A stretch of 63,816 bases of DNA, counting the filler, from Octopus bimaculoides (Eukaryota): NCBI RefSeq assembly GCF_001194135.2. It is 5 parts of 5 records of this genome, joined end to end, with 100 filler letters (N's around TTAATTAATTAA, not from the genome) between each part and the next. Parts side by side here need not be neighbours in the genome. Positions count along the whole stretch, not along the records: positions 1 to 28,177 come from NC_068986.1; 4 more parts are not named here. The stretch is one strand, 5' to 3'. Positions 481 to 22,837 of the stretch are shown in pieces (the stretch's first letter is position 1; each line of letters opens with the position of its first letter). Position numbers and translations under genes: made by a program. The notes under the pieces are model-generated. The model saw only the letters and a list, made by a program, of their open reading frames with translations, ran no database searches and was not told the DNA's origin.

Positions 481-990
481 GTAATAAATATACATGTAAT
501 ATAGGATACAGATTTTAGTGTGGAATAAAAGTTGGAATGTTTGGTAGTTTTCCCAATAAGGAGGTTCATTTTTTTTCAATTTTCAGTTTTTAGTTACTAT
601 GATCTTTTGCGTTTAGTTGTGAAACTTTATTTTGTGGAATGTTTTTCTTTAATATGATATTTAACATGTTTCCATGATTCCAAGAGTAGTAGGAGTCCTG
701 GAGAGTTTTGGACTATATTTTTTTAAAGGGAGCAATTGGTTGCAAACTCCCTTAATGGTTCTGTACAGTTGTTAACATACTCAAAATGAACATCCAAATA
801 TCTATCAGTTTCCTCTTCCATTATAAAAGTATATTATATTATCTTACCTTTTTATCTAGTCGAAAAAACCACAGGAGACTCCTCAGTGGCAAACATAATG
901 TCAACGGCAACAGAAGGTAAATAATATTCTATAAATATTTTACCATTCATTGTCTTGTATACTTGAAATTTATTAAAAATCTAAAGATTT
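470..990 (+). repeat. Duplicated exon-intron cassette, copy 1 (around Y1)
   Basis: Shares long blocks with 3330-3840, e.g. gcgtttagttgtga.actttatttt, gtcctggagagtttt, acatactcaaaatgaacatccaaatatctatcag. Confidence 0.85.
860..916 (+). CDS. Thr/Ser-rich stalk exon Y1 (57 nt, phase 1-1)
   Basis: tttttatctag|TCGAAAAAACC...ACAGAAG|gtaaat; encodes (V)[18 protein letters not shown]. Confidence 0.75.
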
Positions 991-21900: not shown

Positions 21901-22837
21901 ACGACAGACGAAATGCATACCGCTAAGCATTTCATTTCACCTAGCATGATAACGTTTCTGCCAGCTCGCTGCATTAACTTGCCGGCTATTTGTGACAGCA
22001 GTAGTTTGTTAACTATTTTTTCTACATGCATAGTGACTGACATTATCACTGTCTGGCAGTCAGCAATGACCTTTTTCATTTTAGGATAAGCTCTATAGTC
22101 AAGGAAGCAGCCTCGAAATTGTCTCACATGTCCGTTGAGTAACACAATTATTCTCCGTGCATTCGTTTAGTTGATTTGTATTCATGCTCAGGATTTTGTT
22201 GCGAACATTGCCACATATGCTTCTCATTAACCCCTATAGGATTAAGTGTGAACTGGAGATTTCTAACAAAACTGTCCGAGGAACGGGAACGTGAAACTCT
22301 GAGTACCAGTTTTTTGTTATATTTCTGCTGCTTTTAAATAAAGCATATTACTCTACCTCTGGTATTTGAGTACTCTTTTCTCCAGCTTGTTGCACATTTA
22401 TGTGCTTACTGCGGTATATATANNNNNNNNNNNNNNNNNNNNNNNNNNNNNNNNNNNNNNNNNNNNNNNNNNNNNNNNNNNNNNNNNNNNNNNNNNNNNN
22501 NNNNNNNNNNNNNNNNNNNNNNNNNNATATATATCTGTAAAATATGTGACAATTATTCGGTAGCCATGATAAAACTCCGAGTTTTATGTGTGTGTGTGTG
22601 TGTGTGTGTGTGTGTATCTGTGTGTGTCTGTGTGTTTGATATTTGTAGCCACTTCAACATAGCTGCCGTTCGAACGAACTCTATTGCGATTTTTTCACTC
22701 CAAGAAGTCAGCTGGTTAACGATGCAGAGCTGTATACAATGATAAATTGCGAACAGGAGTGTAAATCCCTACCACCTTTTAGCGACAGGATAAGTAGACC
22801 AGTCCTGGTTTCGGGCCATTCTGTTACTCTTCAGTAA
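860..22837 (+). CDS. Multi-exon gene (3' part; 5' end upstream of window): single-pass transmembrane mucin-like protein with SEA domain. Join 860-916, (1103-1180), 3713-3781, 5652-5725, 8087-8148, 12528-12679, 18726-18770, 21078-21210, then cytoplasmic exons (uncertain)
   Basis: All core exons have canonical AG/GT ends. Intron phases chain 1-1,1-1,1-1,1-0,0-2,2-1,1-1,1-2 with no stop codon. Translation: ..[19 protein letters not shown]-([26 protein letters not shown])[179 protein letters not shown].. Confidence 0.8.
1103..1180 (+). CDS. Candidate symmetric exon (78 nt, phase 1-1)
   Basis: tacttcctag|AAATTTCAG...CTAACAG|gtaaat; open frame [26 protein letters not shown]. An alternative in-frame acceptor exists at 1111/1112. 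Confidence 0.5.
1386..2560. repeat. Compound microsatellite block (GT, GA, GATA, GACA, TA, TATG)
   Basis: Directly visible simple repeats; source of many spurious ORFs. Confidence 0.95.
2570..3115. repeat. Low-complexity (GGT/GAT)-rich interspersed repeat, unclassified
   Basis: Imperfect (GGT)n core at 2740-3010 with unique flanks, followed by (TACA)n. Confidence 0.4.
3330..4390 (+). repeat. Duplicated exon-intron cassette, copy 2 (around Y2)
   Basis: Homologous to copy 1 upstream of the exon, and to copy 3 for about 600 nt downstream (e.g. aaaacatattc/agaacatattc, ctcaccattta, gcaattac.ccaacacta). Confidence 0.85.
3713..3781 (+). CDS. Thr-rich stalk exon Y2 (69 nt, phase 1-1)
   Basis: tttttattctag|TCAACAAAACC...ACAGAAG|gtaaat; (V)[22 protein letters not shown]; internal 12-nt repeats ACAGTGCYAAY. 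Confidence 0.8.
5652..5725 (+). CDS. SEA domain exon 1 (phase 1 to 0)
   Basis: tttgtttttcag|TTTACTCC...GAAATG|gtgagt; (V)[24 protein letters not shown]. Confidence 0.8.
8087..8148 (+). CDS. SEA domain exon 2 (phase 0 to 2)
   Basis: ttttctgatattttcag|TTGTTCGAAG...GAAATCAG|gtaaat; [20 protein letters not shown](R). Confidence 0.8.
8455..9545 (+). mobile_element. Penelope-like element: 3' GIY-YIG end as pseudo-LTR, UTR, then N-terminal ORF remnant
   Basis: [31 protein letters not shown]...[15 protein letters not shown], then [25 protein letters not shown] and [16 protein letters not shown], in the typical pLTR-ORF order. Confidence 0.85.
8850..8905 (+). ncRNA. Degenerate hammerhead ribozyme motif in the PLE UTR
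   Basis: CTGACTA (consensus CTGANGA), stem gtgtccacaa/ttgtggatac, then GAAAC at 8896-8900. Confidence 0.5.
9873..10030 (-). mobile_element. tRNA-derived SINE (partial)
   Basis: Reverse complement of the family at 25770 and 49312. Confidence 0.85.
10690..12125 (+). mobile_element. Decayed single-ORF element with L1/Tx1 ORF1-like (CCHC) protein, ending in a hammerhead motif; no RT seen
   Basis: [18 protein letters not shown]..., [11 protein letters not shown]..., [26 protein letters not shown] (zinc knuckle), acidic linker; frameshifted ORF ends near 12065. Confidence 0.7.
12065..12122 (+). ncRNA. Hammerhead ribozyme motif
   Basis: CTGATGA 12072-12078; stem II ggatatc/ggtatct; GAAAC 12110-12114; then tctGTC. 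Stem I pairing is imperfect. Confidence 0.6.
12528..12679 (+). CDS. SEA domain exon 3 with GSVIV cleavage motif (phase 2 to 1)
   Basis: ctatgtttcag|AAACGGCTCCGTTATTGTC...ATATATG|gtaagt; (R)[50 protein letters not shown]. Confidence 0.85.
12812..13140 (+). mobile_element. tRNA-derived SINE
   Basis: Head ggaggcgcaatggcccagcggtta (A-box-like) ... gtttcgattccc (B-box-like). Confidence 0.85.
14249..16513 (+). mobile_element. Helitron/Helentron-like remnant
   Basis: 15266-15900 encodes an R/E/Q-rich N-terminus and [35 protein letters not shown], typical of the region upstream of Helitron Rep. About 47-nt inverted repeats at 14249-14296 and 16219-16265; tetranucleotide microsatellite after the left repeat. 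Confidence 0.7.
17131..17576 (-). repeat. Inverted copy of 16070-16513
   Basis: About 445-nt high-identity reverse complement; the ORF track shows the same peptide [13 protein letters not shown] on both strands. Confidence 0.9.
17890..18180 (+). mobile_element. Mariner transposase 3' fragment
   Basis: [40 protein letters not shown] plus a TIR-like tail. Confidence 0.7.
18410..19395 (+). repeat. Duplicated exon-intron cassette, copy 3 (around Y3)
   Basis: More diverged copy. The upstream donor slot reads TTG|ATAAGT at 18429/18430, versus TTG|GTAAGC in copy 2. Confidence 0.75.
18726..18770 (+). CDS. Thr-rich juxtamembrane exon Y3 (45 nt, phase 1-1)
   Basis: tttgttttccag|CTGAAACAACC...AAAAGAAG|gtaaat; (A)[14 protein letters not shown]; flanks homologous to those of Y1 and Y2. 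Confidence 0.8.
21078..21210 (+). CDS. Transmembrane exon (phase 1 to 2)
   Basis: ttttgttttttag|ATTCTTCC...GGATCG|gtaaga; hydrophobic [25 protein letters not shown] followed by basic stop-transfer RWKKRN. Confidence 0.85.
21302..21315 (+). CDS. Candidate 14-nt microexon 1
   Basis: aatgttttgtacacag|TATAATCACGTTAC|gtaagac; the downstream intron is similar to that after microexon 2. Confidence 0.45.
21659..21672 (+). CDS. Candidate 14-nt microexon 2 (paralog of 1)
   Basis: ggttttctacag|CATATTCTCGTTAA|gtaagat; same length and similar downstream intron as microexon 1. Confidence 0.4.
21765..21965 (-). mobile_element. tRNA-derived SINE
   Basis: gatcgaccccagt..tatcgacccccgaaaggatgaaaggc..gaactcagaacg; same family as 44865. 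Confidence 0.85.
22270..22422 (+). mobile_element. Short hammerhead-bearing repeat (probable PLE pseudo-LTR); second copy at 39158-39300
   Basis: CCGAGGA-ACG-GGAA-CGT-GAAAC at 22276-22297; the following ~130 nt are shared with 39161-39300. Confidence 0.6.
22649..22837 (+). CDS. Candidate terminal cytoplasmic exon
   Basis: Acceptor atttgtag|CCAC. The phase-0 frame is open for 62 codons ([62 protein letters not shown]). The phase-2 frame, joined directly to the TM exon, is open for 30 codons and stops at 22740-22742. Confidence 0.5.
   Translation, partial: PLQHSCRSNELYCDFFTPRSQLVNDAELYTMINCEQECKSLPPFSDRISRPVLVSGHSVTLQ

Follow-up and report, generated by a model that had tools for sequence, protein, structure and literature searches.

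Small exons in a repeat-rich octopus locus encode a probable mucin-like membrane protein with a SEA domain

Does a chain of very short exons, spread over some 22 kb of repeats, amount to a gene, and if so, what kind of protein does it encode? The question arises for a stretch of Octopus bimaculoides DNA (the window, 63,816 nt in all), of which we analyse the first piece (28,177 nt, 36.5% GC, nine N gaps). An earlier reading made from the sequence alone (hereafter the sequence-only reading) had proposed that positions 860-22837 encode an unannotated membrane mucin or glycocalyx receptor with a SEA domain. The piece lies on chromosome CM046606.1 (GCA_001194135.2) at approximately 85,046,042-85,074,218 on the plus strand, with 100% identity by blastn against L001, our name for the chromosome locus that contains it. 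We favor, with moderate confidence, the view that LOC128248076, the gene found here, is a real, 5'-under-annotated member of an octopus mucin-like cluster, whose SEA domain is probably self-cleaving and whose tail is probably involved in signaling. Judging from its paralogues, what the window contains is most likely the 3' module of a hybrid gene of the MUC4-like/SEA kind within a tandem cluster.

The exons themselves are the first line of evidence. The chain consists of seven plus-strand exons (A to G; Table 1) with strong canonical splice sites, compatible phases and no stop codon at all. The splice sites given by the sequence-only reading (five donors and all of the acceptors) are present. 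The donors include G/GTGAGT at 5725, G/GTAAAT at 8148, G/GTAAGT at 12679 and G/GTAAAT at 18770 (a slash marks a splice site or a cleavage site throughout), and each acceptor ends in CAG or TAG after a pyrimidine tract. For both strands, all GT and AG dinucleotides were rated against a simple consensus. A score of 8/9 is reached by only 11 of the approximately 1,640 plus-strand GTs, and six of these 11 are donors of the chain. We consider a candidate exon to be an open frame of 40-160 nt between a strong acceptor and a strong donor. There are five such candidates on the plus strand and none on the minus strand, against an expectation of 0.69 and a maximum of four in 200 second-order Markov simulations. 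The N gaps are all intronic (introns A-B, B-C, C-D with two, D-E, E-F, F-G and G-H) and touch no exon, so the reading frame is carried by splice junctions and not across gaps. Exon C has another in-phase acceptor, at 5607, but the paralogue exons begin V[FY]SY, and we do not adopt it. When joined, exons A to G contribute 19, 23, 25, 21, 50, 15 and 44 residues, respectively, to a product with a Thr-rich stalk, a SEA domain, a Thr-rich linker, a 25-residue transmembrane (TM) helix and the basic sequence RWKKRNAK.

The second line of evidence comes from phmmer, run exhaustively against 1.84 billion representative proteins. Among the matches is a RefSeq protein of the same species, XP_052824449.1 (P0001; 275 amino acids), which is named “uncharacterized protein LOC128248076.” From the exon C Met through exon G, its sequence and that of the chain are 100% identical, and mapping the protein onto the locus reproduces all four junctions on which the sequence-only reading depended (5725^8087, 8148^12528, 12679^18726 and 18770^21078). 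Splice-site scores, phases, the chance test and the RefSeq protein thus all confirm that the short exons chain in phase without stops, and the remark that scanning for open reading frames (ORFs) does not resolve this gene is borne out. The gene had been called unannotated, which is incorrect: RefSeq covers five of the seven exons, under an uncharacterized name and in 5'-truncated form. The model starts inside the SEA domain and omits strand beta1 of that domain together with the in-phase mini-exons upstream. It is 5'-truncated because both the signal peptide and beta1 are missing. A word-indexed protein search with alignment recovered only P0001 and P0004, and without alignment such a search overlooked the 144-residue, 100% identical RefSeq match in its own collection; its negatives do not mean absence.

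The 3' end differs from the one first proposed. The exon that was thought to end the gene at 22837 is not used, as the RefSeq protein and its Octopus vulgaris relative CAI9724672.1 (P0003) both run ...KTLD/RVQVD... into a further exon, H. After ...KTLD, XP_052824449.1 continues with RVQVDKIRAKSVQRLQGESLDMKGDTVQYDEIELN, which is exon H, and the peptide is kept in CAI9724672.1 as KTFDRVQVDRIRAES...YVEIELN. The rejected exon is one of dozens of equally weak in-phase candidates that run from an acceptor to a stop, and it is contradicted by XP_052824449.1 and the relatives. According to the mapping of XP_052824449.1, the coding sequence extends past the piece, with at least three exons after exon H.

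Is the domain at the center of this protein a SEA domain? The claim of a SEA-like domain holds by profile methods and fails in the direct Pfam scan, where the top matches of the spliced peptide (CoV_NSP8, PigN and others) are noise, all below the cut-offs. A single-sequence phmmer search against the PDB also gives noise only (PKA at E 0.3). The gathering score of PF01390, the Pfam SEA model, is 26.4 bits; one homologue falls under it (P0004, 21.8 bits) and another over it (P0012, 29.3 bits). Some phmmer matches (E 2e-7 to 6e-4) are multi-SEA proteins with four to six strong Pfam SEA repeats, one from the soft coral Xenia (P0007) and others from fishes (P0008, P0009, P0010 and P0014), and the query aligns with each repeat. 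A profile built from the octopus-like family only, when searched against the PDB with hmmsearch, matches the SEA domain of human ADGRF1/GPR110 (E 1.3e-4), with RNG/SVIV of the octopus protein aligned to FRNG/SIVAG of ADGRF1. The PDB chain 8hc0_B terminates at ...FRNG, as a cleaved N-terminal fragment of a SEA domain would. By HHalign, the same family profile matches a set of 14 reference segments, each of which matches PF01390 (best E 3.4e-12), with a probability of 98.2% (E 4.5e-14, 87 columns). The G and S of the site are the sole invariant columns among 29 aligned SEA segments; the octopus motif is RNGSVIVD, with the G and S codons at 12532-12537. In the alignment, the beta1-alpha1 loop of the octopus domain is shorter by approximately 11 residues, which may contribute to the Pfam miss.

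Structure prediction adds to this picture. From the single sequence, AlphaFold2 (AF2) gives an unusable model (predicted local distance difference test score, pLDDT, 52). With a 28-row alignment of XP_052824449.1 residues 1-101, which do not include beta1, it reaches a pLDDT of 76 and a predicted TM-score of 0.61, with helices at 5-23 and 52-65 and strands at 26-35 and 40-47. The order helix-strand-strand-helix-strand is the one expected of a SEA domain, whose fold is ferredoxin-like (beta-alpha-beta-beta-alpha-beta), with beta1 left out. The sequence-only reading had looked to a SEA hidden Markov model or a structure match for its test. PF01390 itself gives none, the family profile gives the matches above, and the top Foldseek match is indeed a SEA domain (2e7v), although a weak one (E 0.073, TM-score 0.50), with no match reaching 1e-3. 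We take the domain to be SEA on sequence-profile evidence, with weakly supportive fold evidence.

The remaining parts agree with a type I membrane glycoprotein in that, as originally proposed, a Thr-rich stalk and a membrane-proximal SEA domain are followed by one TM helix, a basic stop-transfer sequence and a cytoplasmic tail. The top 19-residue Kyte-Doolittle mean of the TM helix is 2.73. In the 146-residue tail of XP_052824449.1, Y[DE]E[IV] occurs four times, with the first copy (YDEI) in exon H; in the O. vulgaris relative, Y.E[IV] occurs three times. The sequence pYEEI is the preferred ligand of the SH2 domains of Src-family kinases. There are seven N-X-S/T sequons in the ectodomain, and one of them (NGS) is at the predicted cleavage site.

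The stalk is built from repeated units. Mini-exons A and B (42 residues together, 40% Ser+Thr) each sit in a copy of a duplicated cassette (Table 1), and a mini-exon encoding EITAGKSSVANTMSTATE in the upstream copy (L001 1764-1820) provides a third stalk unit. All cassette copies have a common acceptor, a GAAG/GTAAAT donor and phase 1-1; therefore, any number of mini-exons could be included without a change of frame. Exon A is homologous to DKTTEN.TVPTTE peptides that precede the SEA exon both in CAI9724672.1 and in XP_052824448.1, a “mucin-like protein” of O. bimaculoides. The mini-exon copies as a whole are homologous to DKTTE..TVPTTE units, which are found before the SEA exon in the former and joined onto an EGF array in the latter. 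The visible Thr-rich length is approximately 40-60 residues. For the MUC1/3/13/17 type, a proline-, threonine- and serine-rich stretch (PTS) of typically 100 residues or more is the criterion. Since the visible stretch is so short, “mucin” serves here as a family label and not as a demonstrated property. The array of stalk units may continue upstream or inside the gaps, and the N gaps may hide further in-phase mini-exons. These gaps are also present in the chromosome-level assembly CM046606.1. In chicken and zebrafish Muc13, PTS repeats are encoded one per exon, and alternative splicing has been proposed as a source of variation in stalk length (PMC1552070).

The genomic neighborhood contains close relatives. 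XP_052824448.1 (domains C8-3_MUC4 and EGF) has the accession directly preceding that of LOC128248076 and is likewise on the plus strand. Its annotated end is approximately 84 kb before the ATG of LOC128248076 and approximately 79 kb before the window. Past this end, in the paralogue locus that we call L002, there are two Thr-rich mini-exons together with SEA exons resembling C, D and E. They are collinear with the window exons, and their splice sites are identical. The protein identity of these exons to the window exons is 61-81% (81% between the D-like exon, L002 59774-59836, and exon D), and the C-like exon, with a cag/ acceptor and a /GTGAGT donor, encodes VFSYAVTIWINMTFNDNLKDKLKQA. Because these SEA-like exons stand just past the annotated end, the paralogue has its own unannotated SEA module. 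A further paralogue approximately 260 kb upstream, XP_052824446.1, has NIDO, C8-3_MUC4 and EGF domains. The GDPH motif of the paralogues is found in WMFGDPHIQTLDG.

The RefSeq model of the adjacent paralogue has peculiarities of its own. The C-terminus of XP_052824448.1 (L002 50179-50439 and 54072-54383) consists of an unrelated peptide repeated twice, ILRSNEETVF...FISGASYSLFIAYTPYSF..., and the model skips the SEA exons of its own gene at about 55.5, 59.8 and 61.6 kb of L002. This C-terminus is likely a mis-annotation.

Related proteins are found in other species as well. O. vulgaris has three or more “mucin-4-like” models on a single chromosome, and in one of them, CAI9724672.1, VWD and EGF are joined to Thr-rich mini-exons, a SEA domain, a TM helix and a tail with YxEI. 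The C-terminal half of the SEA domain, the TM helix and the tail of the octopus chain are 54-65% identical to P0003 and P0002 (54% for P0003). In Argonauta hians there are neighboring fragments (GAB1608672/78/79), one of which joins the junction of exons D and E. A 3.5-kb contig of a Logan transcript from another species (L003; SRR27666073) carries an ORF that, but for one frameshift, goes from an EGF array to a Thr-rich stretch, SEA, TM and a tail whose last residues are FRIKRPKLI. Finally, a protein of the annelid Ridgeia piscesae (P0036) brings together VWD, C8-3_MUC4 and EGFs with a TM helix and two SEA domains. The suggestion that the protein may be lineage-specific has to be given up: both Argonauta and the annelid Ridgeia have relatives of it, and the SEA matches reach cnidarian and fish proteins. 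As far as these comparisons go, the stalk-SEA-TM-tail module is most likely the conserved 3' end of a lophotrochozoan family of MUC4-like/SEA hybrids.

We can now outline how such a protein might be made and work. Eight small exons encode at least two Thr-rich stalk units of 19-23 residues, a SEA domain split over three exons, the linker, the TM helix and the start of the 146-residue tail, with each stalk unit on a symmetric (phase 1-1) mini-exon inside a duplicated cassette of approximately 3 kb. The product would be a type I surface glycoprotein, and its stalk is expected to be O-glycosylated. The SEA domain is expected to cleave itself at G/SVIV in the endoplasmic reticulum, with the two halves held together non-covalently, so that the glycosylated ectodomain could be shed under force while the TM stub stays behind. 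The Y[DE]E[IV] motifs resemble optimal ligands of Src-family SH2 domains and could give the stub a signaling output. By analogy with the paralogues, a VWD/C8-3_MUC4/EGF ectodomain, encoded upstream of the window, probably makes up the N-terminal part. A wider proposal, which we put forward tentatively, as possible rather than probable, is that cephalopods have an expanded tandem cluster of hybrid receptors at the cell surface that combine a GDPH-cleavable MUC4-type VWD+EGF ectodomain with a self-cleaving, membrane-proximal SEA domain and a tail with several YEEI-type docking sites for Src SH2 domains, and in which stalk length is variable by means of mini-exon cassettes. Stalk length could vary among paralogues, and perhaps among tissues, by unequal crossing-over or by exon skipping.

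Several points weigh against this account. The VWD and EGF exons are tied to the paralogues and none to LOC128248076, and the adjacent paralogue bears its own SEA exons, so it is not simply the 5' half of LOC128248076. CAI9724672.1 is weak evidence for the architecture of any one gene because its model is a chimera of 163 kb with mini-exons out of frame. Exons A and B are outside the RefSeq model, and no transcript of this exact gene was seen. PF01390 does not match the spliced peptide at E<=10 or XP_052824449.1 at E<=0.1, the Foldseek match is weak and the structural model does not contain strand beta1. Autoproteolysis, glycosylation and SH2 docking are all read from motifs.

If the upstream ectodomain is set aside, the gene would be a small stand-alone SEA membrane mucin, in which a signal-peptide exon a few kilobases upstream is followed by the mini-exons, SEA, TM and tail, with no VWD or EGF part. 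There is some ground for this: RefSeq holds the gene separate from the neighboring mucin-like protein, no annotated gene lies within 10 kb upstream, and short SEA-TM proteins with Ser/Thr-rich N-termini do exist among the matches (P0011, 302 amino acids; P0012, 250 amino acids). However, the mini-exon cassettes reach at least 3.4 kb before the window and no start was found there, and wherever the context can be read (the paralogue in L002, the L003 transcript and Ridgeia P0036), the module comes after an EGF array. We regard a stand-alone gene as unlikely.

The locus could also be a partial tandem duplicate of the 3' module, non-functional or with a truncated product, whose frame is still open because of its young age. 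The cluster does contain recent segmental duplications, with cassette copies 77-90% identical, and RefSeq lacks the upstream exons. Moreover, mini-exon A has diverged from its upstream copy as much as the intron flanks have (about 90% identity), with no sign of purifying selection there. On the other hand, at least eight exons here and at least three beyond the piece retain their frames, splice sites, the G-S pair and the YxEI motifs, and the protein is only 54-65% identical to its paralogues, which is hard to square with a young dead copy. We therefore consider a dead duplicate quite improbable. The idea that GT/AG sites and short open frames in AT-rich repetitive DNA have fallen into a chain by chance deserves almost no credence, for although the low GC content, the many microsatellites and the rejected 22837 exon show that plausible false exons are easily found, it is refuted by the excess of strong candidate exons over simulation, confined to one strand, by the exact match to XP_052824449.1 and by homologues across genera.

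Returning to a 3' module of a MUC4-like/SEA hybrid gene, we ask which known systems it resembles. The nearest is the octopus mucin-like cluster itself (XP_052824448.1 and XP_052824446.1; CAI9724672.1, CAI9724667.1 and CAI9724669.1; GAB1608672/78/79), with which it shares chromosome and strand, collinear exons and the DKTTE..TVPTTE style of mini-exon. Paralogues vary in how many mini-exons they have and in whether linker exon F is present, and in P0003 the SEA domain leads directly to the TM helix; the NIDO/VWD/C8-3/EGF part is known in the paralogues but not for LOC128248076. The class that was originally assigned, MUC1/3/13/17, has to be replaced, since the relatives are MUC4-like “mucin-like proteins” (NIDO/VWD/C8-3_MUC4/EGF) with a SEA-TM module. 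Vertebrate MUC4 (NIDO-AMOP-VWD-EGF-TM, cleaved at GDPH) has VWD, C8-3_MUC4, NIDO and EGF in common with the N-terminal domains of the octopus family, and bird and mammal MUC4 are among the matches to the N-terminal part of the paralogue. MUC4 is not known to have a SEA domain, and its huge PTS repeat is encoded by a single exon. The octopus module, by comparison, has a membrane-proximal SEA domain and a stalk assembled from mini-exons.

With the vertebrate SEA mucins (MUC1, MUC3/12/17, MUC13 and MUC16) the octopus protein shares a PTS-like stalk, a SEA domain with G/S[VI][VI]V, a single TM helix and tyrosine motifs in the tail. It differs from them in having no detectable orthology, a stalk of tens and not hundreds of residues, and a SEA domain that is below Pfam detection, with the shorter loop described above. 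Neither MUC1, MUC3, MUC12, MUC13 nor MUC17 is among the best 15 library-wide matches or the profile matches in the PDB; MUC16 appears only at Foldseek rank 27. The best match with a solved structure is ADGRF1/GPR110 (PDB 7wxu and 8hc0), where the RNG/S site can be aligned residue by residue; this is an adhesion G protein-coupled receptor, and the SEA domain alone is in common. Ridgeia P0036 (1379 amino acids) unites VWD, C8-3_MUC4, an EGF array, SEA and a single TM helix in one protein, and the octopus family profile finds its SEA domains at E 2e-8 and 2.5e-6. It differs from the octopus protein in having a second SEA domain, in lacking a Thr-rich mini-exon stalk and in its tail, which is very short and bears no YxEI.

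The main import of these results is for annotation, as the RefSeq models across the octopus cluster are fragmentary. Because Pfam does not see the SEA domain, these proteins are listed as “uncharacterized.” Once corrected, the models would reveal lophotrochozoan membrane-tethered, SEA-containing mucin-like proteins fused to MUC4-type ectodomains, would bear on when membrane mucins of the SEA type originated, and would provide a second independent case of a mucin stalk with one repeat per exon, after Muc13 of chicken and zebrafish. Current views are not overturned by the finding. The module of LOC128248076 is neither a lineage-specific novelty nor an orthologue of MUC1/3/13/17.

Table 1. Exons of LOC128248076 and copies of the mini-exon cassette (positions along the window unless L001 is given)
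Feature	Position	Strand	Remarks
Exon A, Thr/Ser-rich mini-exon	860-916	+	57 nt, phase 1-1; acceptor TTTTTATCTAG/, donor AAG/GTAAAT; absent from RefSeq model
Exon B, Thr-rich mini-exon	3713-3781	+	69 nt, phase 1-1; splice-site sequences as in exon A; absent from RefSeq model
Exon C, SEA beta1 and start of alpha1	5652-5725	+	74 nt, phase 1-0; RefSeq coding sequence starts at ATG 5684
Exon D, SEA alpha1 to beta2	8087-8148	+	62 nt, phase 0-2; in XP_052824449.1
Exon E, SEA beta2/beta3 hairpin, then alpha2 and beta4	12528-12679	+	152 nt, phase 2-1; predicted autoproteolysis site G/S (NGSVIVD)
Exon F, Thr-rich juxtamembrane linker	18726-18770	+	45 nt, phase 1-1; mini-exon cassette copy that has diverged
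Exon G, DSSD, TM helix (21089-21163), stop-transfer RWKKRNAK (21164-21187), GSTKTLD	21078-21210	+	133 nt, phase 1-2
Exon H, first purely cytoplasmic exon, (R)VQVDKIRAKSVQRLQGESLDMKGDTVQYDEIELN	26501-26603	+	in XP_052824449.1; YDEI at 26583-26594
Cassette copy 1, exon A with intron flanks	512-996	+	repeat families D12-D15; 76-84% identity to copy 2
Cassette copy 2, contains exon B	3383-3861	+	repeat families D12-D15
Cassette copy 3, diverged, around exon F	18738-18850		61% identity, D12
Upstream cassette copy	L001 894-2188 (3.4 kb before the window)		89.8% identity (blastn, window against L001)

The O. vulgaris model CAI9724672.1 illustrates how such a cluster can be misread. It fuses several tandem paralogues, and its residues from about 840 to 1290 consist of about 15 repeats of NHRRNVHIAPDSANNSATDGALDRAKDNRR, which are the Thr-rich mini-exons in the wrong frame. 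Read in that same frame, exons A and B of the window would give RKNHRR... and a 16-residue peptide.

The introns contain a variety of other elements. Microsatellites are plentiful in the piece ((GT)n, (AT)n, (AGAT)n, (ATAC)n and (TTA)n), and scans for tRNA genes and Rfam families are empty. A plus-strand ORF of 121 amino acids (15630-15995) has a Cys/His pattern (...CCKSG) that resembles the N-terminal part of Helitron-type transposon proteins; it has no Pfam match at E<=0.01. Close to it is an inverted duplication (16070-16513 and 17131-17576; 445 nt, 94% identity, approximately 620 nt apart), the left arm of which adjoins an N gap (16514-16849) in the spacer; a 27-residue peptide is common to ORFs of both arms. 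Either a transposon whose inverted ends are long or an assembly artefact could account for it. Interspersed repeats at 9846-10026, 21755-21981 and 25772-26200 have many copies in L002, in both orientations and with 72-88% identity; they look like an unclassified family of short interspersed elements. They gave no tRNA or Rfam match. In intron G-H, antisense to the gene, a minus-strand ORF of 216 amino acids (23926-24576) matches the reverse transcriptase family RVT_1 (E 1.3e-17), and the GC content around it, across 23000-25000, rises to 48-50%. It looks like a retroelement fragment, possibly LINE-like (long interspersed nuclear element).

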